From positions 124,001 to 188,000 of IMG/VR virus record IMGVR_UViG_3300022744_000022: a stretch of 64,000 nt of DNA, one strand, 5' to 3'. The translations under genes and the position numbers were made by a program. Position 1 is the stretch's first letter; every line of letters begins with the position of its first letter. This document shows positions 3,394 through 60,522 of this stretch, one piece after another. The notes below the pieces were generated by a model. It had not been told where the DNA came from. It made no database searches and was given only the letters and a program-made list of their open reading frames with translations.

Positions 3394-4074
3394 CTATTCG
3401 TCATCTGCCATGAGCAGGTGATCGAACAACGTGAGGGGTTTGGGGCCGGTGATTGCAGTGAATGCCCCAGGCACCACGGTGATCTGAAAGGCCACAGCTT
3501 CTCGCAGGCTATCGATCTGGTGCGTCTGACTCTTGAGCCGGTAACCCTCAGGCACCGCTTGCTGTGCCACGGCGTTGAGATCTTGCCCCACGATCAACCT
3601 ACGGTCCCGGCTAGCGTGGACGCAGTACGTACCGCATCTGGGGCAGAGCCAAAATGTCGTATTCGAGGGGAGCACCTCATTCAGGACTTCGTTGGTCTCA
3701 ACCCCGGAGCAGGAAGCGGGGTTCCAGCAGAGCTTTCCCAGGAAGGAAGCGGCGGCCACTTTCTGGGTAAGCACTTGGGATTGCACGCCTCTTGGGGCAT
3801 GGTTCGGACACACAACCTCGGGTTCCGCCTGACGGGGACGCTCATATCGCAAGAAGGCATGGTCTGAGCAAAACCGTCTAGAGCACTCTTGCCAGCACTC
3901 AGGGGCGGCCCGCTTGAACTGCCACGTGGTGTACTGCCGGTTGAACCCGACGGCTGCCCGTACCCCCGTCAGACTCACGAACGTTACGGTAGTCCCGTCC
4001 ACCCAAGCCACGATCCCCTCGACTCCCGAATGAGTGTCGGTCCAGGTTTCTCCAACTTTAGGTAAGGGCAGCAT
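3394..4074 (-). CDS. Hypothetical Cys-rich (zinc-binding) protein with TLFDHL-acidic tail
   Basis: 226 aa, several CxxC-like pairs, ends PLTLFDHLLMADDE. Confidence 0.8.
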   Translation of the reverse strand: MLPLPKVGETWTDTHSGVEGIVAWVDGTTVTFVSLTGVRAAVGFNRQYTTWQFKRAAPECWQECSRRFCSDHAFLRYERPRQAEPEVVCPNHAPRGVQSQVLTQKVAAASFLGKLCWNPASCSGVETNEVLNEVLPSNTTFWLCPRCGTYCVHASRDRRLIVGQDLNAVAQQAVPEGYRLKSQTHQIDSLREAVAFQITVVPGAFTAITGPKPLTLFDHLLMADDE

Positions 4075-4091
4075 CTTCTTTTGTTGCGTTT

Positions 4092-4110
4092 GGTGTAGAA
4101 GGGCTACACC
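4092..4110. promoter_or_regulatory. Face-to-face pair of GGTGTAG elements between divergent genes
   Basis: GGTGTAG-AAGGG-CTACACC inverted repeat. Confidence 0.55.
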
Positions 4111-4123
4111 GAGTCCCGTAACG

Positions 4124-4558
4124 ATGCCTTCCCCGATTCCCCCGCAGGATGTTCAGCGAGCCCTCATGGCTCTCGGTGTGTCCCAGCAAGACTTTGATGC
4201 CATCCGACGGGTTCCGTTTCCGCAAGCTCAGACGCTACTGCAAGAGTTGAAGACGAAAGCTCGCCGCAACTACAAGCGACTGGCTCTTGAGCTGCACCCG
4301 GACCGGACACAAGGCGATGAAATCAAGGCTCAGTTGTTCGTGTTGCTCGGCCAAGTGCTGGGGGAACTCGACAAGACCACGGTGCATCCGCCTCCGCCGC
4401 CCCCACCTATGCCCTTCGTCAACTTCACCGCTGTGAATGTCTCGACATGGCAAGCATGGCAGGCACACGGCGTCCCTATGTCGTCAGCCACTACAGCCAG
4501 CACCGCTGGGTTTAGCCCAGCACAAGTGATCCGCATCGTGAGGATGCGGCCCCGATAA
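4124..4558 (+). CDS. J-domain (DnaJ-type) protein
   Basis: YKRLALELHPDR with HPD motif; start moved to ATG 4124. Confidence 0.8.
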   Translation: MPSPIPPQDVQRALMALGVSQQDFDAIRRVPFPQAQTLLQELKTKARRNYKRLALELHPDRTQGDEIKAQLFVLLGQVLGELDKTTVHPPPPPPPMPFVNFTAVNVSTWQAWQAHGVPMSSATTASTAGFSPAQVIRIVRMRPR

Positions 4559-20014: not shown

Positions 20015-20200
20015 ATGCCAAAACGCAAGTTCAAGAACCCGAAAGCTAAAGCCTGGGACGTTGCCGCTCATGGCCTAGCGGTGTGGCTGGGTGAACGTTG
20101 TTTGGCGAACGACGAAACGGTCCAGCACATCAAAGACCACATCCTCCCGTCCATGAGGCGACGGGCTGAGATCATCGAGAGGAACACCAAACATGGGTAA
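20015..20200 (+). CDS. Small basic protein
   Basis: Start ATG 20015; overlaps next start. Confidence 0.6.
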   Translation: MPKRKFKNPKAKAWDVAAHGLAVWLGERCLANDETVQHIKDHILPSMRRRAEIIERNTKHG

Positions 20201-21521
20201 CGCGATTCTTCTGGCTGGTCTTGGCTTCGGGGATGAGGGCAAGGGCTCCGTCATCGACCACCTTACGCACACCACCGGCGCTACCCTGGTCGTTCGCTAC
20301 AACGGCGGGGCACAAGCGGCCCACAACGTGATTACGAACCGAGGCTTCCACCACACGTTCGCTCAATTTGGATCCGGCACCTTCGCAGGGGCCAAGACTC
20401 ATCTGAGTCGGCACATGCTCGTGAACCCCAACAACCTCTTGAACGAGGCCAAGGCTCTTGAGGGGCTCGGGTTCGACCCCCTGGACCTGATCACTCTTGA
20501 ACGAGACGCCCTCGTCACGAACATGTTCCAGGTAACCGCGAACCGTCTTCGTGAGGCTCACCGTGGGAAAGGGCGTCACGGGTCCTGTGGCCTTGGAATC
20601 GGGGAAACGGTGGCGGATGCTCTCCAGCACCCGGATCAAGCGTTGCGTATCGGTGACCTCCAGGATCGCGAGCTGACCCGCAAGAAGCTCACGTTTTCCC
20701 GTGACCTAAAGTTCGCCGAGTTCGGTGGACGAGGACCTTCTGTAGATCACCCCTTCAGCGATCAGCGTCTTGAATTCTACCTAGACCTCTACGCGGACTT
20801 CGCCAAACGCTATCAAATCGTGGACCGGCAGTACCTTGAGCAGCAGCTCAAGCAAGAAGGCACCGTGATCTTCGAGGGGGCTCAGGGCGTCCTATTGGAT
20901 CAGGACTACGGATTCCACCCGTACACAACGTGGTCCGACACGACCTTCGGCAATGCCCACGACCTGCTCCAAGGGTTCGATGGGCCGGTACGTAAGATTG
21001 GCGTGCTCCGGGGCTACATGACCCGGCACGGTGCGGGACCTTTCCCGACCGAGCTACCTGACGACGTTCGATTGGACTGCGACATCCAAACGGACCTGCA
21101 CAACAAGTGGGGTGAATTTCAACGGCACTTCAGGGTCGGGCATTTCGATGCCGTGTTGGCCCGTTACGCCTTGGAAGTCATTGGGGGTGTGGACGAGTTG
21201 GCGATCACCAACCTCGATAAGCTCGGGGCAAAGCCGCAGATCTGCCCAAGCTACCGTGACGACTTCGGTCGCAAAGTTCACCGCATCGCGCCCAAGAAGC
21301 TCGATGACTTCATGTTGGAACAAGGTGCCCACCACTGGACGCGGATCTTACCCACCTTGAAGCCCAACTACGTGACGCTGCCTGATCGAGTCAGCATCGT
21401 AGACTGCATCGCCGAAGAACTTAGAACCTCTGTGACGCTGTGCTCAGTCGGACCCAAGACCCAGCATAAGTGGCCAACCCGTTACCTCCGAGACCTACAG
21501 GCGAGCCAATGGAACTCCTGA
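20193..21521 (+). CDS. Adenylosuccinate synthetase-like (divergent PurA family)
   Basis: GFGDEGKG, RYNGGAQAAH, FEGAQGVLLD, HPYTTWS. Confidence 0.88.
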   Translation: MGNAILLAGLGFGDEGKGSVIDHLTHTTGATLVVRYNGGAQAAHNVITNRGFHHTFAQFGSGTFAGAKTHLSRHMLVNPNNLLNEAKALEGLGFDPLDLITLERDALVTNMFQVTANRLREAHRGKGRHGSCGLGIGETVADALQHPDQALRIGDLQDRELTRKKLTFSRDLKFAEFGGRGPSVDHPFSDQRLEFYLDLYADFAKRYQIVDRQYLEQQLKQEGTVIFEGAQGVLLDQDYGFHPYTTWSDTTFGNAHDLLQGFDGPVRKIGVLRGYMTRHGAGPFPTELPDDVRLDCDIQTDLHNKWGEFQRHFRVGHFDAVLARYALEVIGGVDELAITNLDKLGAKPQICPSYRDDFGRKVHRIAPKKLDDFMLEQGAHHWTRILPTLKPNYVTLPDRVSIVDCIAEELRTSVTLCSVGPKTQHKWPTRYLRDLQASQWNS

Positions 21522-22705
21522 CCATCGCCACCAACATCAAGGCTGCCAAGTGCCCTGAGGACATCTTCGGTGGCCCTCCGGATGGCAGCACCGTTACGCC
21601 GGTCTACCGCCAGCTCATCCTCGTGATCCACCCTGATCACTTCGATGGAAAGCCCACAGAGCTGGCCACTGCCACGGAAGCATTCCGGCTCCTGGCTCAG
21701 CTCCGGGGTGAGGCCGAACGCAAGATCAAGGCGGGCAAGTACGGCCAGAAGAAGGTCAAGGCACCGCCACCCAAAGAGCCCTTCCGCCCCTCAGTGGTTG
21801 AGGCCAACGGCAAGCGCTACATCTTGACGGATCAGGTTGCCTCGGGGGACCTGTGCGACATCTTCCTGTGTACGATCTCCAACGGATCTGCCGACCACAA
21901 AGCCATTTTTAAGATCGTCAAGAACGGGGCTGACAACGATCTCGTTGAAAACGAGATCAAGGTACTTGCGAAGCTCCACGCGCCTGGGGTCAAGTTCGAC
22001 GAACGCTTTTTCCCGAAAACGAACGACTCGTTCGTCATCCGGGGACCCGGGTTTCAACGTCAAGTCAACGTCCTGTCGTGGTTTCCAGAGCACCGAGGAC
22101 TTGACGAGGTGCTGAGAGTCTTCCCGGACGGCATCGACTACCGTGACATGGTGTGGATGTTCAAACGCATCCTGCACGGCGTAGGGTTCGCCCACGAGAA
22201 CCAGATCGTACACGGGGCCCTGATCCCGCCTCACATCCTGATCCACCCGGTGGACCACGGGGCCAAAATCATCGATTGGTCGTATGCGGTGGACATTACG
22301 CCTAAAGTCAAGGCGGTCAAACCCAAGACTCACCGCAGCCTTTACGACCTCTTGGACGCGGACGACATCCTTACTCCAGACCCGCACGTCAAGGCAATCA
22401 GCGCCGACTACAAGTTGTATTACCCGCCGGAGATCCTTAAGAAAGAGATCCCGACGCCCGCCAGCGACATTTACATGGCAGCCAAGTGTGCGGTAGCCTT
22501 GGTGGGTGGTGACTTGAAAACGAACGCAATGCCCAACGAGATCCCTGGAACTGTCCGGGCCTTCTTTGAGCGTTGCCTTCATGCGGTTCCGGCCAAGCGT
22601 CCGCAGAACATGTGGGACGCCCATGAGGAGCTGGACCGAATCTTGAAAGCAGCCGTGGGCAAACGAACTTACCGACCCTTCCCCATGCCTGAGGTACGCC
22701 CGTGA
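21509..22705 (+). CDS. J-domain-like N-terminus fused to Ser/Thr kinase-like domain
   Basis: YRQLILVIHPD; IFKI...NE; IVHGAL..HILI...IIDWSYA...YYPPE. Confidence 0.8.
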   Translation: MELLTIATNIKAAKCPEDIFGGPPDGSTVTPVYRQLILVIHPDHFDGKPTELATATEAFRLLAQLRGEAERKIKAGKYGQKKVKAPPPKEPFRPSVVEANGKRYILTDQVASGDLCDIFLCTISNGSADHKAIFKIVKNGADNDLVENEIKVLAKLHAPGVKFDERFFPKTNDSFVIRGPGFQRQVNVLSWFPEHRGLDEVLRVFPDGIDYRDMVWMFKRILHGVGFAHENQIVHGALIPPHILIHPVDHGAKIIDWSYAVDITPKVKAVKPKTHRSLYDLLDADDILTPDPHVKAISADYKLYYPPEILKKEIPTPASDIYMAAKCAVALVGGDLKTNAMPNEIPGTVRAFFERCLHAVPAKRPQNMWDAHEELDRILKAAVGKRTYRPFPMPEVRP

Positions 22706-23904
22706 TGATCCGTTATGAAGACCGCCTCGCACAGCTCCGAGAGCTGCCCGTACGGATCTACTGTGCGGCAGCCGGGGCAGGAGCTGGGATTCAACAGATC
22801 CTCTGGAACCCCGTCGGAGCATCGGCCTATCTGGCTGGGGCTGCCTTCCCGTACTCCAAGGAGTTGTCCACAGACTTCTTGGGTTTCCAGCCCCCGAGCT
22901 TTGTGTGCCTTGATGAAGCCATCGACCTCGCGATCTCGTCCTATCTCAAGGCCGACAACGGGGATCCGACCAAGCAGCCCATCGGCCTAGGTTTGACCGC
23001 TGCGGTCGCCACGGCAGTGCAGCACCGTGGGGATCACCGAGTTCACGCGGTCGTGATCACGAGGGATCGTGTGCTTGCCTCGGAGATGACGCTCCCCAAA
23101 GAGGGTCCGCACGTTCGTAACCGAGACGGCAGCATCGCGGACACGCTCGGGATCGAATTGATTTTGGCGGCAGCCAACCTGATCCCCGAGCCCGTCCGAG
23201 AGGCATACTTGGAAGCCACCGACGGACAGTGCCTCAAAGACATCACGCAGAGGGCCCGCCAGCACTTCCTGAGCCGACCGCTGTTTACCCGGTACGGTCA
23301 ACGCCTTGAGGCACCTGCGGGGAACCTGACGCTGTTCCCGGGCAACTTCGACCCGCCTCACGAGGGGCACTTCGCCAACGCGGGCGAAGAAGTGACGTTC
23401 CAGATCACCGCGAGCCCGCCGCACAAGCCGGGTTTGAGCCTCACGGACATGTTGGGCCGCGTTCGCCACTTCCGGCACAAGCGGGACGTGCTGTTCATGG
23501 AAGGCGGGGCACTCTACCTGGAGAAGGCCCGGAGGTTCCCTGGTTCGACTATCATCCTGGGGAGCGATGCCCTCGAACGGATGCTTGATCCCAAGTGGGG
23601 CGTGGAAGTGCTGCCGTTGCTGACCGAGTTCCGCGAGCTGGGGACCAGGTTCAGGGTTGCGACACGTGAGGGGGACGAGTTCGCACGGCTCCCGATCCCA
23701 GGGACCTTCCGAGACATGTTCACTGAGCTGCCCAAAACCCCGTACGCGGGCTTGAGTTCGACGCAGATCAGAGAGGGCGTATTGGCCCCCACCTCTCACG
23801 CGCCCCCCGGCACGGGCCAAGTGTGTGGTGCCGCTAATGATTGCACCCGGTTCAAAGGACACACAGGGCAGCACGCCAATCTCTACAACCAGCGTGTTTG
23901 GTAA
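22702..23904 (+). CDS. CinA/PncC-like domain fused to NMN/NaMN adenylyltransferase-like domain
   Basis: GASAYLAGAAFPYS CinA-C pattern; PGNFDPPHEGH (HxGH) and LSSTQIR. Confidence 0.75.
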   Translation: MMIRYEDRLAQLRELPVRIYCAAAGAGAGIQQILWNPVGASAYLAGAAFPYSKELSTDFLGFQPPSFVCLDEAIDLAISSYLKADNGDPTKQPIGLGLTAAVATAVQHRGDHRVHAVVITRDRVLASEMTLPKEGPHVRNRDGSIADTLGIELILAAANLIPEPVREAYLEATDGQCLKDITQRARQHFLSRPLFTRYGQRLEAPAGNLTLFPGNFDPPHEGHFANAGEEVTFQITASPPHKPGLSLTDMLGRVRHFRHKRDVLFMEGGALYLEKARRFPGSTIILGSDALERMLDPKWGVEVLPLLTEFRELGTRFRVATREGDEFARLPIPGTFRDMFTELPKTPYAGLSSTQIREGVLAPTSHAPPGTGQVCGAANDCTRFKGHTGQHANLYNQRVW

Positions 23905-24531
23905 TCACAAGTCGTCTTCGTCCTCTAGAGCAGCCCACAAGCCGCCGCCGCTGCCCCGGAGTTGGTTCTGCATCACACGTTGAAGTGGTGTGACGGCTTT
24001 GAACATGGCCTCCCGTCCAGAGTCATCGGGGACGGTCAGCGTAAAGAGCATCACGGAGTGCGTTTCATCGAGTAGCGTCAGAAGCCGGGTGCCTTCTTTG
24101 GGGCCAGGATCGAAGATGAAGTGGAGCCGCCAAACCCCACCGCCCGCACCCTGCTGGTTCTGGAACCCAGTCACCACGTGGTAGGGCTCGTCCGAGAGGG
24201 GCTCTGCTTGATACTGCGTCCCAATGGCTCGCAACCGAACGGCGAGATCCGACGAGTTTGCCAGCCCGAGGTTCCGCTCTCTAGTTTCTTGTATCACCTG
24301 CTCGGGGGTCTTCTTCACGGGGACGTGCAGGATCGTCTCCATGTATTCGTGGACACCCTGCGTCACTTTCGCTTTTGGGGTGGCCGTGTAGCTGATCGTC
24401 CGATTCCGTGGGTGCTCTTGGTGTAGTAACCCATTAGCCTTGCCCTGGACCCCCATGGTCCGGATCACGATCACCGTCGGACATTCCTCAGGGTTCAACC
24501 GAATCGGCCTACGTGTGACATCGATGAGCAC
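23905..24531 (-). CDS. Hypothetical protein ending LWAALEDEDDL
   Basis: GGTGTA 9 nt before GTG 24531. Confidence 0.75.
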   Translation of the reverse strand: MLIDVTRRPIRLNPEECPTVIVIRTMGVQGKANGLLHQEHPRNRTISYTATPKAKVTQGVHEYMETILHVPVKKTPEQVIQETRERNLGLANSSDLAVRLRAIGTQYQAEPLSDEPYHVVTGFQNQQGAGGGVWRLHFIFDPGPKEGTRLLTLLDETHSVMLFTLTVPDDSGREAMFKAVTPLQRVMQNQLRGSGGGLWAALEDEDDL

Positions 24532-28600: not shown

Positions 28601-29029
28601 GTGGCCCGGACCAGACAACGATTCACGAGCAAGGTGACGGTTAGGACAACGCTGCCGTTAGGTCGTAGTGAAACGCTCGGTTCGGTGCAGAACAAGCAAA
28701 TCCGGCGTCCCGATGCCCCCGGGTACATCACGGGGATGCTGGGTAAGTGGTTCCTCGTGTTGCATGAGGGGGAAACGACCCCCGCTATCTACAACCCAGA
28801 GGAACTCAGGCTTGAGCCGCACGCCTACTGGCGGGTCACCCACACCCTGGCAGGACAGCCCTACTTCAAGGAATTCGGAACCTACCGCGAGGTCGAGAAG
28901 CATTTGAAAGCGCTGGGCAAGTTGGGCGGTGTAGCCCTTGGTATCGAAGGCCCTTTCTACTCCGCAAAGGAGTTGGAAGAGGGGCCTGTCCCCACCCGAA
29001 ATCTTTTTGATCATTTGAACGACGCATGA
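28601..29029 (+). CDS. Hypothetical protein ending RNLFDHLNDA
   Basis: Coupled to next gene by ATGA; start uncertain. Confidence 0.7.
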   Translation: MARTRQRFTSKVTVRTTLPLGRSETLGSVQNKQIRRPDAPGYITGMLGKWFLVLHEGETTPAIYNPEELRLEPHAYWRVTHTLAGQPYFKEFGTYREVEKHLKALGKLGGVALGIEGPFYSAKELEEGPVPTRNLFDHLNDA

Positions 29030-31198: not shown

Positions 31199-31437
31199 GC
31201 TACCAGGCTCAGTACCGCTGCGTTCGCTGCCAGCAGCGGTTCGAGGTCACACAGGGCGTCTTCGGGTGCCCTCCGGGGCACCAAGCAGACCCTGATAGCC
31301 CGTGCGGGCGTAGCCAGCGCCAGTACCGTTGTGCGAGCTGCGCCAAAGCCCAGAGGTGCCCCCAATGCGAACACCTCTGGGTCGAGTGGCTCAACTACCA
31401 GACCCTCGTGGCAACGCATAAACTTCCTGTGCTGTAG
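31195..31437 (+). CDS. Zinc-ribbon protein
   Basis: CVRC, CASC, CPQC; ATGA overlap. Confidence 0.65.
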   Translation: MSYQAQYRCVRCQQRFEVTQGVFGCPPGHQADPDSPCGRSQRQYRCASCAKAQRCPQCEHLWVEWLNYQTLVATHKLPVL

Positions 31438-31444
31438 CCAAGGT

Positions 31445-33163
31445 ATGCTCCCCGAACGAGTGCTTCGCAGGTACCTGCGAGCGAAAAGCACCAAGAAGCG
31501 CATGGTCGTCATGATGGGCCCACCCGCAGCGGGTAAAGGCTTCTTCTTGGGCGAGCCGCCGCCGAAGTTCGGCTGGAAACTCCCCAAGATGCTCGTGGAC
31601 GACAAGGGCAACCCGCTCTTGACCGAGGACGACATCCCGGAACGTCCGCACTCAGAGGAATCCGACAACCACCTGCGAGCTATCCAGTTCGAGGAAGCAA
31701 AGAAGCACTTCGACACGCTCAAGGCGGCACACGAAGAAGGTCCGGAAGCCTTCAAGAAGGCGCTCTCCGACCACTGGTACGCGACCAAGGATGGGGATCG
31801 CGTAGACCTCAGCAAGACGGTCAACTACGACGATTTCCCTGAGACCTTGAAGGACTACCACGCCAAGACGAACAAGGATTTCTACGTCTCGATGCGGGGT
31901 TGGCACGACGACGCGAAAGAAAAGAACGAGGTTACGGGTAAGCCCAAGGAGCGCTTCAAGGACGAGGCGAGGCACCGCTTCGAGGAGACGCTGCACAAGA
32001 AGATCGAAGAAATCGAGGACATGTTGATCGTGGACTCGGCAGGCGAGGACATCGACGCCCAAGACTACAAGGGCCAGATCGCTGCCGCCAAAGAGGCTGG
32101 ATACGAAGTTACGGTCATCTTCCTGCATCCTGAGCAAGCCGACACCGAGCTGTCCAACCTGGCTCGCGGTAAGGTGCAGGGCAAGCGCATGGTGGACCAG
32201 TCGGATATCTCGAACTGGTACGAGAAGAACGCTGAGGCTCTCAAGGACATCCAAGAAGCAGCCCCCGACAACTTCGTGCATTACCGGAAAGGGCCGCCTG
32301 ACGCGGACCCCAAGAAGGCGGCTGAGTTGCGGGCCAAGGCTCGCGACATGATGAACAAGCTCTCGGGCCTAGAGGGCGAAGAAAAAGAGAAGGCCAAGCA
32401 GGAGATCAATCAAGTCTTGTACGGGGCTGCTTCGTACAAGCTGCACAAGCCTACGTCGTACGGCTCGGCTGTGAGCGGGCTTCCTGAGAAGCCCGAGGAA
32501 AGTAGCATCGCCGACGCCGTAGAGGCCATGAACACCGAGGCTGAGAAGCGATCAGGTTCAGGCCAGCCCAAGAAGGTCAAGCCTGAGGGTGAGCAGACTC
32601 CGGAGAAGCAGACTCCGGAGAAGCAGCCTCCGGAGAAGCCCGAGGGTAAAGCCAAACCGGAGGCCGGGTCGGAGAAAACCCGGATGAACTTCCTACGGGA
32701 GCTGGGGGATCAGAAGGTCAAGAACCCCAACCCGGAGTCGCGGGATCGCTTCCCTCAAATTAAGATCAGGTCGCTACCCTGGACATACCAGAAGCCCTAC
32801 TACGAAAAGTGGCGGGGCAAACAGGCAGCGCAACGTGTGGCAAAACGCTACCTGGAGGCAACGATGGCTGGTAAGGGATGGCTCGCAGGTTGGATGCATG
32901 AGCTTGCGGACGAGCTTGGGAAGACCAAGGTCGAGGGCTACAAAGTTTCTGCTGAGGCCGGTAAAGGTCCGCTGGTCCTGGTGACCATCAAGGGTGCTAC
33001 CGAGGACTCAACGACTGCCCGCAAGGCCAAACAATCGATCGAGAAGGTGATGGAGCACTCCATCAAGAAGCACTCAGAGGGTGTCCCCGGGTTCAAGCAC
33101 CGCGTCAAGAGCTTCAACAAAGGTGCGGATCTCATACTTGAGTGCGAGGTCTTGTTTCCTTGA
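31445..33163 (+). CDS. Large protein with Zeta-toxin/AAA_33-like P-loop kinase domain and RVxxRY motifs
   Basis: GPPAAGKG Walker A, LIVDSAG Walker B, AGYEVTVIFL; start ATG 31445. Confidence 0.75.
   Translation: MLPERVLRRYLRAKSTKKRMVVMMGPPAAGKGFFLGEPPPKFGWKLPKMLVDDKGNPLLTEDDIPERPHSEESDNHLRAIQFEEAKKHFDTLKAAHEEGPEAFKKALSDHWYATKDGDRVDLSKTVNYDDFPETLKDYHAKTNKDFYVSMRGWHDDAKEKNEVTGKPKERFKDEARHRFEETLHKKIEEIEDMLIVDSAGEDIDAQDYKGQIAAAKEAGYEVTVIFLHPEQADTELSNLARGKVQGKRMVDQSDISNWYEKNAEALKDIQEAAPDNFVHYRKGPPDADPKKAAELRAKARDMMNKLSGLEGEEKEKAKQEINQVLYGAASYKLHKPTSYGSAVSGLPEKPEESSIADAVEAMNTEAEKRSGSGQPKKVKPEGEQTPEKQTPEKQPPEKPEGKAKPEAGSEKTRMNFLRELGDQKVKNPNPESRDRFPQIKIRSLPWTYQKPYYEKWRGKQAAQRVAKRYLEATMAGKGWLAGWMHELADELGKTKVEGYKVSAEAGKGPLVLVTIKGATEDSTTARKAKQSIEKVMEHSIKKHSEGVPGFKHRVKSFNKGADLILECEVLFP
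32594..32638 (+). repeat. 3 x 15-nt coding tandem repeat (QTPEK)
   Basis: CAGACTCCGGAGAAG x2 then CAGCCTCCGGAGAAG. Confidence 0.9.
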
Positions 33164-46979: not shown

Positions 46980-47467
46980 CCACTGACACCAAACCTCGGA
47001 TCAACACCATCCACAATCTCGGGCCCATCGACCCCGTGGAGCCCGGACACACGTACGAGTTCCTGTTTGGCATGAGCACACGAGCCGGTCACGTACACGA
47101 GCGGGGCTCGCTCCTGCACGTCGAAGACCGCACCACCCGAACCCCGCATGGGGAGATCAGTGAATCCGGAAGCAACTGGGTGTGCCGAACCCAGCACGGC
47201 ACGTCCGTGTGGGCTACTCTTGAGCAGTGCCTGTCCCGGGGCATGCTCAAACGCCTGAGGGACTACACGGTTTACTTCTGGAACGGGGAGCTGGGGGCAG
47301 ACCCCAAGGACCGTCGGGGACGCCCTCTCGTACACAACACCGTCATGGGCTTCACAGCCGACGACCTCGAAAATCTGACGGGCCACTACGACGTGATGAT
47401 CACGACGAGCACTTGCCCGCCCGTCCTATACCTCAACAAGGTCGGTGGGAAATTCGGCCAGCGCTAG
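46976..47467 (+). CDS. Hypothetical protein
   Basis: 163 aa. Confidence 0.75.
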   Translation: MTTDTKPRINTIHNLGPIDPVEPGHTYEFLFGMSTRAGHVHERGSLLHVEDRTTRTPHGEISESGSNWVCRTQHGTSVWATLEQCLSRGMLKRLRDYTVYFWNGELGADPKDRRGRPLVHNTVMGFTADDLENLTGHYDVMITTSTCPPVLYLNKVGGKFGQR

Positions 47468-47946
47468 TCGTCTGCCAGATGATCCCAAAGGGTCACTGGC
47501 TTAGCAGCGGTCTCCGGCGTAGGGGTGTCTCGCCTGTAGAGACGACGCTGATACAGGGGTTGCAGATCAGGCTCAACCCGTTCCCCAAACCGGGTGAGCG
47601 CTTCGATCATCCCACGTGAGATCCTGGCATCCGAACGTATACGGATCCTGACCCTGGAGGGGTGGACTTCCACACCGTGAAATCCGATCTCGGCGGCGAG
47701 CGCTTGGATCGTTTGAACGAGGTGCCGATCCAGATCCCGTTCACCGGCCACGTGATCCTCGACCTCAAGCCACCCTTCACGATCTCGGGAGCGTGCAGGG
47801 TTCACGATGAGCCGACGCAGGTAGCTTAGCGCCAAGACCGTGGAACGCCCTGTACGGCGGTAGTCCTCGGTCCCATCATGGAGCCAGTCCAAGGCTTCCA
47901 GAGCCCTGCGTTGAGGCGGCGTGAGCGAGAAGACGGGTGGGGGCAC
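47464..47946 (-). CDS. Hypothetical protein ending PVTLWDHLADD
   Basis: GGTGTA 9 nt before GTG. Confidence 0.75.
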   Translation of the reverse strand: MPPPVFSLTPPQRRALEALDWLHDGTEDYRRTGRSTVLALSYLRRLIVNPARSRDREGWLEVEDHVAGERDLDRHLVQTIQALAAEIGFHGVEVHPSRVRIRIRSDARISRGMIEALTRFGERVEPDLQPLYQRRLYRRDTPTPETAAKPVTLWDHLADD

Positions 47947-50655: not shown

Positions 50656-52074
50656 ATGTCCAAGACCCTTGGGGCCCTGCGTGCCCTGTTGCGTGAGGGG
50701 TTGTCCGTCGAACAAGACGGCAACCTCGTGTGTGTTCGGCCTCTAAACCACCCTGACGGCCTCCCGGCGGAAGTGCTGCTTCCCCGGGATCACCCGCTCG
50801 AACCGAAGGCTCTCAAACAGCTCTCGGATTTCGCACAGGTGCGTCACCCGGCAGGCGGGGAGGTCCTGCAAGCGTTCGCCACCCCGGACTTCCACCCGGG
50901 ATCCGTGGTGCCGATCGGGTGCGTCTTGGCCACCAGCCAAGACATCGTGATCCCCGATGCCATTGGGACCGATATCAACTGCGGAATGCGTATGCATATT
51001 GCGGACTTGACGGTCGATCAGCTCATGGCCAAAAAGCCCGAGTGGCTCAAGGCCATGAAGGGCGACCTGTTGATGAGCACTCGGGACCTTCCGATGTCGG
51101 TGGCTCAGATCAGGGCGATGTTCCGCACAGGACCGTTTGGGTGGCTCGAAGAAGTCGGGAAGCGGCCCTTGGGTATGCTGGGGCGCTCGGACCTCAGGCA
51201 GCTCCAGGGGGAGCTAGACCAGAGCTTCGGGCTCGGGAGCCTCGATGGGGATGACCGTTACGCCCCACAGGAAATGATGCCGGAGGACCGGGACACCATC
51301 CGGGACTGCTTCATCGGCACCATTGGGGGCGGCAACCACTTCGTGGAACTCCAGGTTGTCGAGGAGATCTTGGACAAGGGTTGGGCGTTCCGGTGGGGGA
51401 TCAGGAAGAACCAGATCGCCGTGATGGCCCACTCAGGGTCCCGTCGAGTTGGCATCATCGTGGGGCAGTCCTGGATGCAGCATGCCCGGGAGCGGTGGCC
51501 CCAAGGAGTCCCGCACCCTGAGAACGACATCTTCGCCCTGCACGGCAAGGATGCCTTGGCCTACGTGACCGCGATGAACACGGCAGCCAATTACGCGGCG
51601 GTGAACCGGCTCTTGCTTGTGGAGATGGTCCGGGACCGGCTCCGCCAGAGCTTCCCCGGGCTTGAGCTACCGCTGGTGTTCGACGCCCCGCACAACATCG
51701 TGACCCAAGAGAACGGGTTCATGATCCACCGGAAGGGCGCTACGCCTGCCCACCTGAATCAGCCGGTCCTGATCCCGGGCTCCATGGGACAACCGAGCTT
51801 CTTGATGGTCGGGCACGGCAACCAACGCTTTCTACAGTCAGCCTCGCACGGGGCGGGTCGGAAACTGTCCAGGCGAGACATGCACCGGCTCGACAAGCAA
51901 GGCCTGGACCTTGGGCTCGATGCCGTGGAGTGCATCACGCTCAAGAATGAGCGGCTCGTGCAAGAAGCGCCCGCTGCCTACAAGGACATCGGTCCCGTGG
52001 TGCAGGTGCAGGCTGAGGCGGGGATTGCTTCGCCGGTAGCGAGGATGCGGCCGTTGCTGACGTTCAAGGGGTAA
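50656..52074 (+). CDS. rtcB: RtcB RNA ligase
   Basis: PDFH, DINCG, GGGNHF.E, HSGSR, HRKGA, PGSMG, SHGAGR, EAPAAYK. Confidence 0.93.
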   Translation: MSKTLGALRALLREGLSVEQDGNLVCVRPLNHPDGLPAEVLLPRDHPLEPKALKQLSDFAQVRHPAGGEVLQAFATPDFHPGSVVPIGCVLATSQDIVIPDAIGTDINCGMRMHIADLTVDQLMAKKPEWLKAMKGDLLMSTRDLPMSVAQIRAMFRTGPFGWLEEVGKRPLGMLGRSDLRQLQGELDQSFGLGSLDGDDRYAPQEMMPEDRDTIRDCFIGTIGGGNHFVELQVVEEILDKGWAFRWGIRKNQIAVMAHSGSRRVGIIVGQSWMQHARERWPQGVPHPENDIFALHGKDALAYVTAMNTAANYAAVNRLLLVEMVRDRLRQSFPGLELPLVFDAPHNIVTQENGFMIHRKGATPAHLNQPVLIPGSMGQPSFLMVGHGNQRFLQSASHGAGRKLSRRDMHRLDKQGLDLGLDAVECITLKNERLVQEAPAAYKDIGPVVQVQAEAGIASPVARMRPLLTFKG

Positions 52075-59522: not shown

Positions 59523-60063
59523 TCTCCTGAAGCATCTTTATAAATAGTTCCCCCTGTTCCTGTGCATCGGACAGGGCGACATGGGTATGGGGGTTCTTGG
59601 AAAACCAACGCTTGGGCATGTTCCGCTTAGTAGCCTTTCGGAAGTCGCTCTTGAGCATGCACATGGCGAACGTCTTGATGTCTAGGCCGGAGAACGAGAA
59701 GGGGCTCTCGCCCGCGAACCTGATCAAGTACCAGTACACGAACATGAAGTCGTACGTGGCGGGGTACCCGACGAACACAGGCTTGCCAGGAAGGCCCTTG
59801 AGCCACTCTAGGTAGCCCTTCATGGCATCCACGGGGGTCACAAGGCCTTGACGGCACGCTGCCCAAGCCTCGGGCTGCCCCGCCCACCATTCGGCGGTTT
59901 TGGGGTCTGCGGAGGCCCCTGGTAGCGTTTCTAGATTCCGCGTGAAGGTGTCGAGCAACGTGCCCTCTGACGAGAAGGCAGCGGATCCGAAGCTCAGCAT
60001 CGAGTTGGGGCCGGGGATTGGGCCGTCGGATTTAATGTCTGTGGAGACGTAGATTTCTTGCAT
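59506..60063 (-). CDS. DEDDh 3'-5' exoribonuclease-like protein; first motif reads DIK
   Basis: [27 protein letters not shown]. Confidence 0.85.
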
Positions 60064-60072
60064 CCTGGCCGC

Positions 60073-60089
60073 TACACCAAGCCGGTGTA
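60073..60089. promoter_or_regulatory. Back-to-back GGTGTA pair between divergent genes
   Basis: TACACC-AAGCC-GGTGTA; 9 and 10 nt from the two starts. Confidence 0.7.
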
Positions 60090-60099
60090 CTCTGCCCGG

Positions 60100-60522
60100 G
60101 TGCTCATCAACCTACTCGGCCCGATCATCCTTGCACCGTACGCGGATCGGGATGAACTCAGCTTCTTGACCAAGGACACGCGCCCTAAGGGCCTCGTGAC
60201 TGTGATCCACGACGGCCTTGTGTACAAACAGCAAGGGGGCGAGCGGCAGGTCTTGGTTGAGGCGTACTGGCAAGTCCAAGAAGGTGTGATCCGAACCGCA
60301 ATCCCGCTCAACCAAGCCTGTGGGCATAAGTTCTACTGTGGACACGTCTGGACCTCAGAACACGGCGAGTTCAACGTCAACAACCGCATCGTCTCAGTGT
60401 GCCTCAATGACGACATCTTGATCGTTACCCCTACGGGCGGGCAACCGCTGATGCTTGACCTTGGGCTAAAGATGGAAATCACGCAGGAAAAGCGAACCCT
60501 CTGGGATCTCTTGGCTGACTAG
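60100..60522 (+). CDS. Hypothetical protein ending [10 protein letters not shown]
   Basis: Start moved to GTG 60100. Confidence 0.7.

Follow-up and report, generated by a model that had tools for sequence, protein, structure and literature searches.

A peptide tag that ends many small proteins of huge bacteriophages also occurs inside a surface loop of their J-domain kinase-like protein

A short peptide that ends dozens of unrelated small proteins in a lineage of huge bacteriophages is also present within a surface loop of the J-domain kinase-like protein of these phages. This distribution points to a docking-tag network that has not been described and whose receptor remains to be identified. 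The sequence analysed (the window) is a stretch of 64,000 nucleotides, bases 124001-188000 of the 208,486-bp IMG/VR virus record IMGVR_UViG_3300022744_000022, which is 59% G+C and is rated 44% complete by CheckV. The original prediction placed a copy of the tag, RSLYDLLDADD, between DWS and PPE in the kinase activation segment and stated that six other proteins end in the same motif. That observation is correct, and its coordinates and sequence are exact. The features concerned are as follows.

21470..22705 (+), gene for the J-domain plus kinase-like protein; the longest ORF is 411 aa, and the probable start is the ATG at 21509, giving 398 aa
21509..21739 (+), N-terminal J-like domain, with the HPD tripeptide at 21629-21637
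22211..22234 (+), catalytic loop HGALIPPH, aligned with HRDxKxxN, with Ala for the catalytic Asp and His for the Asn
22274..22282 (+), DWS, the DFG equivalent that starts the activation segment
22295..22381 (+), insertion of about 30 residues in the activation segment, comprising a Lys/Pro-rich linker, the tag and a short linker
22334..22366 (+), RSLYDLLDADD, the internal copy of the tag (core SLYDLL at 22337-22354), read from CGC AGC CTT TAC GAC CTC TTG GAC GCG GAC GAC
22424..22432 (+), PPE, the APE equivalent that ends the activation segment
2023..2457 (-), ORF ending in the tag, ..VTLFDHLAKEDEPT, with no Pfam or PHROG family
3394..4074 (-), ORF ending in the tag, ..LTLFDHLLMADDE
23905..24531 (-), ORF two genes downstream of the kinase, ending in a variant tag, ..GLWAALEDEDDL
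28601..29029 (+), ORF ending in the tag, ..RNLFDHLNDA
47464..47946 (-), ORF ending in the tag, ..VTLWDHLADD
60058..60522 (+), ORF ending in the tag, ..RTLWDLLAD, the closest match to the kinase copy
61704..62768 (+), ORF with one predicted membrane helix, ending in the tag, ..ATLFDKLDK

RSLYDLLDADD occupies residues 289-299 of the 411-aa ORF. The database gene call (P0002) starts at Met14. The protein consists of an N-terminal J-like domain, a Lys/Pro-rich linker, and a kinase-like domain. The latter matches Pfam Pkinase (PF00069) at 1.1e-7 (32.0 bits against a cutoff of 31.7) and phrog_3043, annotated as kinase, at 6.6e-44. An AlphaFold2 model built on 119 homologues is confident (pLDDT 94.1), and its best Foldseek matches are M. 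tuberculosis PknB (E 1.4e-11, target TM-score 0.77) and AAK1. The DNAJB1-PKA chimera 4wb7 ranks fifth. The HPD tripeptide is at residues 54-56, between helices 42-53 and 62-87 of a modelled helical hairpin (42-87). The match of the protein under study (P0001) to the DnaJ profile is weak (E 0.098, 13.2 bits against a cutoff of 27.8), a scan of its own genome gives E 0.007, and homologues P0113-P0115 carry PF00226.

DWS aligns with DFG of CDKL2, and PPE is the APE-type motif. Homologues without the tag motif have a short loop at this position, indicating that the segment is an insertion of about 30 residues. Conservation was assessed across 119 homologues. K148 (the VAIK Lys), H248, W270 and E321 are invariant, whereas E162 (the αC Glu), G249, A250, H255, D269 and P320 are at least 90% conserved. 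The ATP-anchoring Lys, αC Glu, DFG Asp and APE Glu are thus retained, but HGALIPPH aligns with HRDIKPEN of CDKL2 and lacks both the HRD Asp and the catalytic-loop Asn. The family therefore has a conserved nucleotide-binding pocket without the usual catalytic base. Phosphotransfer activity cannot be assumed, and the protein may be a pseudokinase or an atypical enzyme.

Six ORFs in the window end with [TSN]L[FW]D[HKL]L followed by acidic residues, and a seventh ends with the variant GLWAALEDEDDL. Whole records of related huge phages were scanned for peptides enriched in the last 16 residues of ORFs. Each tag-bearing genome has its own flavour of the tag. Gene sets were crude ORF calls, so the counts below are approximate.

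G000 (the window's genome; 208 kb, 44% complete): TL[FW]D[HKL]L, 9 observed against 1.8 expected within 12 residues of the C-terminus
G001 (416 kb): [TN]LWDHL, LWD. 26 observed against 0.41 expected, p 1e-37
G002 (437 kb, complete): PT[AVC]W[ED]R[LI], p 6e-13
G003 (512 kb, complete): PTRFERIL, RF.R 52 observed against 1.4 expected, p 2e-62
G004 (407 kb, complete): [ST]RF[DE]RI, p 1.5e-11
G005 (350 kb): PTAWE[AV]L..DDDF, p 1e-6
G010 (156 kb): TVFDHLL type, five tags

Synonymous codons vary at the conserved residues, which indicates selection on the protein, and a DNA- or RNA-level explanation of the motif was rejected on this ground. The tagged proteins are mostly small, soluble and unrelated to each other, and orthologues keep a tag but take the flavour of their own genome. 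Orthologues of the 3394-4074 protein in G001, G005 and G010 do so. Those of the 47464-47946 protein end NLWDHLTDPQ in G001 and KTVWERLQEDIPED in G002, and the G001 orthologue of the 23905-24531 protein ends GLWGAVLDDDF. The 15 residues before the tag are enriched in Pro (2.2x) and Lys (2.0x), the same composition as the kinase insertion. Copies also occur at N-termini. The residue two before the aromatic is S, T, N or D, which is the pattern of a helix cap and not of a phospho-acceptor, so a phosphorylation-site or FHA-type reading was rejected. About 36 tagged proteins were scanned against Pfam, 8 of them also against PHROGs, and only one clear hit was found, an RlaP-type nucleotidyltransferase. 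An Atlas feature search of the 3394-4074 protein gave nothing above noise.

Within this genome alone the kinase copy cannot be distinguished from chance. A position matrix built from the C-terminal tags gives the kinase site only 5.8 bits, a score reached by shuffled proteomes in 197 of 200 trials. A chance resemblance within an unrelated low-complexity insertion is nevertheless contradicted by the comparative data and is very unlikely. The insertion and motif, as [TS][LF][FY]D[HY]L.DD, are present in 31 of 32 members of the 99%-supported clade that holds P0001, while the flanking linker varies. Among the 119 homologues, about 45 carry the motif in the activation segment, 26 in the N-lobe β2-β3 loop and 10 at the N-terminus, and 38 have none. 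On a tree built without the insert columns, well-supported branches force at least 4, 2 and 2 changes for these three sites, respectively. Each kinase motif scores best against the C-terminal tag matrix of its own genome in 5 of 5 genomes. In G004 the tags read TRFERI and the kinase TRFDRI, and in G002 the tags read PTAWERL and the kinase PTVWDRL.

All seven tag-bearing genomes (G000-G005 and G010) have a tagged kinase, and all three genomes without this tag (G006, G007 and G008) have a J-domain kinase that lacks the motif. Presence of the segment in homologues from genomes lacking tagged proteins had been set beforehand as grounds for rejecting the link, and the outcome favors the link. All the genomes compared were reached through the kinase, which biases this co-occurrence toward genomes that have it.

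The interpretation offered in the original prediction, that the kinase may be regulated by the tag receptor or compete for it, is only partly supported. The segment is an insertion in the activation segment and is the same motif as the C-terminal tag. However, nothing shows that the motif regulates the activation segment, and its occurrence in the β2-β3 loop or at the N-terminus in other clades makes tethering a more likely shared function than gating of the active site. Competition for the receptor remains an inference.

The favored explanation, with a probability of roughly 0.58, is that RSLYDLLDADD is a genuine internal copy of a docking peptide used across the proteome. The tag has a small polar helix-cap residue (S/T/N/D), a variable residue, an aromatic residue (W/F/Y), an acidic residue, any residue, an aliphatic residue (L/I), and then an acidic run, and is presented on a flexible Pro/Lys-rich linker. 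It is appended to the C-terminus, and sometimes the N-terminus, of about 7 to 50 mostly small, unrelated proteins of unknown function per genome. In the kinase-like protein it is spliced into a surface loop with the same linker-plus-tag layout, where AlphaFold2 predicts a short helix over residues 291-296 (LYDLLD). In this view the peptide would tether the protein to the same receptor that binds the tagged proteins. The coordinated change of flavour across the tagged proteins of a genome argues that this receptor co-evolves with the tag and is probably phage-encoded. The J-domain, which would recruit host DnaK, would then sit next to the tagged proteins or at the same site. The activation segment would be one of three interchangeable insertion points, and any effect of receptor binding on the active-site cleft is a possible secondary consequence and not the core function. 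Both ends of the protein are occupied, by the J-domain and by a conserved C-terminal GK(R/P)xYRPFxMP tail, which would explain the use of a loop in this clade. The identity of the motif, its conservation, its co-variation with each genome's flavour, its co-occurrence with the tags and its independent insertion sites are demonstrated by these analyses, whereas the existence of a receptor, its being shared, binding of the tag to it, the tethering function and recruitment of DnaK by the J-domain are inferred.

The kinase-like domain could itself be the tag receptor, although this is considered unlikely. C-terminal tags would then be docking motifs for its clients or substrates, which the J-domain hands to DnaK or which become phosphorylated, and the internal copy would be an autoinhibitory pseudo-ligand or a handle for self-association. 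Domains with pseudokinase-like active sites often act as binding scaffolds, J-domain proteins are client adaptors (a phage example is Rki; PMC3486835), and all three insertion sites lie on or next to the N-lobe and cleft. Every tag-bearing genome examined has the kinase, subject to the bias noted above. The insertion is modelled with pLDDT 67-85 and not as disordered, which could mean that it packs against the kinase body, as this alternative expects. On the other hand, the family exists without tags in G006, G007, G008 and in cluster C mycobacteriophages, suggesting that its ancestral function does not need them, and three different insertion sites fit a free tether more simply. A complex prediction of the G005 kinase domain cut free of its own motif (P0097 residues 30-304) with a tagged G005 protein (P0122 residues 71-171) scored 0.00 without an answer and is not evidence either way.

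A degron or timer signal, recognized by a host or phage protease or adaptor and limiting the lifetime of early proteins and of the kinase, is also unlikely. Many tagged genes are small ORFs in accessory, early-like clusters, and terminal peptide degrons are established in bacteria. However, deeply internal loop copies are poor substrates for terminus-dependent unfoldases, the acidic, amphipathic character differs from that of known ClpX or Lon tags, and co-variation of flavour with phage lineage suggests a co-evolving phage partner.

A sliding-clamp-binding motif of the T4 gp45 or PIP type is less likely still. The tag resembles the T4 motif SLDFLF, T4 ligase provides a precedent for a loop-inserted copy (PMC6212786), and G001-G005 encode a clamp candidate (phrog_947 at 4.8e-10), beside clamp-loader subunits in related genomes. 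No clamp was found in the incomplete 208-kb record of the window's genome. The replisome proteins identified in G002 and its relatives, namely FEN, NAD-dependent ligase (LigA), RecA, clamp loader and RecD2, carry no tag. FEN ends in a different, conserved PIP-like motif, [IM][LV]xxFF, and the tagged proteins scanned have no recognizable DNA-metabolism domains.

Searches for other receptors found no phage Hsp70, no DnaN by Pfam and no tubulin. The tag-bearing genomes scanned have up to 5 candidate J-domain matches each, several below the Pfam cutoff, and none in the 73%-complete G005. One conserved family, present in G000-G004 and not found in G005, G006 or G007, combines a J-domain with a C-terminal domain of about 270 residues. 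It folds confidently (pLDDT 92.6), but the C-terminal domain has no clear PDB match, and it is a candidate receptor without direct support. Subtraction of the gene content of the tagless genomes did not narrow the search, because G006, G007 and G008 are too distant and 71 of 83 core genes remained.

Huge phages are rich in proteins with no known function, and the tag would sort a large subset of them into one functional network: about 7 proteins in this genome fragment, about 45 in G001 and about 50 in G003. It also provides a direct experimental handle, because a tag peptide can be used to fish out the receptor. The kinase-like protein is the only recognizable enzyme family found carrying a deeply internal copy, which would link the network to host chaperone recruitment through its J-domain. 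The system is a clear natural example of one docking motif moved between three positions of the same fold and, if the inferred receptor exists, of a tag co-evolving with its receptor across a viral lineage. A more speculative and doubtful possibility is that the tag is an address label of a sorting or hand-over system not seen before in phages. Up to about 5-7% of a huge phage's proteins, nearly all of unknown function, would be routed by one co-evolving peptide to a common phage-built site or machine, such as a compartment, an assembly, or a J-protein/DnaK hand-over station, and the J-domain pseudokinase would be drawn there to remodel or regulate them.

A docking peptide read by a hub is a familiar element. 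What is new is this particular tag, its scale (up to about 5-7% of ORFs in G003), its lineage-specific flavours and its insertion into a possible pseudokinase. In the searchable literature, no paper containing the motif strings was found, and none linking short linear motifs to jumbo or huge phages.

The kinase-like domain shares its fold with eukaryotic-like Ser/Thr kinases of the PknB type and with pseudokinases, but its activation segment carries a predicted docking peptide and not a known phospho-acceptor loop. Phage-encoded J-domain proteins, such as Rki of RB43 (PMC3486835) and those of jumbo phages (PMC7824862), have an HPD-bearing J-domain predicted to recruit host DnaK. Rki has neither the kinase-like domain nor the tag, and phage J-domain proteins fused to a tagged kinase-like domain are not known. 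In protein import into the chimallivirus phage nucleus (PicA/Imp; PMC11087766), a jumbo phage likewise sorts a subset of its own proteins, but no conserved linear signal was found there and recognition uses a surface patch. Here there is a clear linear tag, no PhuZ-type tubulin was found in searches that did not include chimallin, and no compartment is known.

Other hub-and-peptide systems include the PIP-box with PCNA, bacterial clamp-binding motifs, the SSB C-terminal tip, Hsp70 EEVD with TPR or class B J-proteins, and the encapsulation or cargo-loading peptides of microcompartments and encapsulins. In these a short motif on a flexible linker, placed at the N-terminus, at the C-terminus or internally, is shared by unrelated proteins and read by one folded receptor, and encapsulation peptides are likewise short amphipathic helices at either terminus. 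The sequence pattern of the tag differs, however, and no shell, encapsulin or TPR receptor was identified, shell families lying outside the searches made.

The closest precedent is the phage T4 gp45 sliding-clamp interaction motif (LDFLF), which forms the C-terminal tail of the gp43 polymerase and also lies in a loop inserted in the NTase domain of T4 DNA ligase (PMC6212786). In both cases one short hydrophobic and acidic peptide, forming an amphipathic helix (a predicted one here), is at the extreme C-terminus of some proteins and in a flexible, lineage-specific and independently acquired loop within the catalytic domain of another enzyme, and it serves, here by inference, as a docking tag. 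The phage tag described here differs in marking roughly 7 to 50 proteins of unknown function per genome and none of the identified replisome proteins, in its unidentified receptor, in the separate PIP-like tail of FEN in related genomes, and in a flavour that changes between phage lineages.

The gene for the J-domain kinase-like protein is directly preceded, in the window, by a gene for an adenylosuccinate synthetase (PurA-like, Pfam 3.9e-66), and the two genes overlap. This pair is conserved in every relative examined, and the PurA-like protein also has homologs in G006, G007 and G008, the three genomes that lack the tag. The family of the kinase-like protein shares a conserved extreme C-terminal tail, GK(R/P)xYRPFxMP, which could be a second docking element. 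Genes of an NAD salvage set, a CoaD-like nucleotidyltransferase, an RNA ligase and a protein with a zeta-toxin-like kinase domain are also present. The positions of these features in the window are as follows.

20193-21521 (+), adenylosuccinate synthetase (PurA-like), directly upstream of the kinase gene and overlapping it.
22670-22705, C-terminus of the kinase-like protein, with the conserved tail.
15244-17866 and 22702-23904, NAD salvage set: an NrtR-like Nudix regulator, nicotinamide phosphoribosyltransferase, and a cytidylyltransferase-like protein that looks like an NMN adenylyltransferase.
11730-12281 (-), CoaD-like nucleotidyltransferase.
50656-52074 (+), RtcB RNA ligase (1.6e-94).
31331-33163 (+), 610-aa protein with a zeta-toxin-like kinase domain (7.6e-8).

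The tag-bearing genomes scanned carry up to 5 candidate J-domain matches each, several of them below the Pfam cut-off. In the window, a small J-domain protein gene (4034-4558, +) sits divergently next to a conserved tagged gene (3394-4074, -). The same pairing recurs in two related genomes, G001 (about 269.8-270.9 kb) and G010 (about 123.9-125.6 kb). A conserved J-domain protein carries a C-terminal domain of about 270 residues that has no clear PDB fold match. It has 87 metagenomic homologs, and its AF2 model has a pLDDT of 92.6. Its gene is found at the following positions in the window's own genome (G000) and in four related huge-phage genomes.

G000, 64669-65796 (outside the window).
G001, 313479-314510.
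G002, 21787-22965.
G003, 249465-250865.
G004, 252851-254149.

In G003, a complete 512-kb genome, 33 to 52 ORFs end in PTRFERIL plus acidic residues (for example 243801-244046, -), and one 81-aa ORF carries two copies. The kinase is the only sizeable protein of a recognizable family there with a deeply internal copy. In the window's genome, but outside the window, a 112-aa ORF at genome position 192263-192601 (-) has TLWDHLKEDE 21-25 residues before its stop, depending on how the motif is delimited, and this is either a tag with an unusually long tail or a mis-called stop.

G006 lacks the W/F tag, but a different short motif, [LIVM]LExY, appears near 5 C-termini against 1 internal occurrence. 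The G006 kinase does not carry this motif, which may be an unrelated terminal motif. In G002 the 5'-3' exonuclease (FEN; 332606-334423) and its orthologs in G001, G004 and G005 end in a conserved motif, [IM][LV]xxFF, and a divergent clamp candidate (419 aa, phrog_947) and clamp-loader subunits lie in the same module. This conserved FEN terminus is PIP-like.
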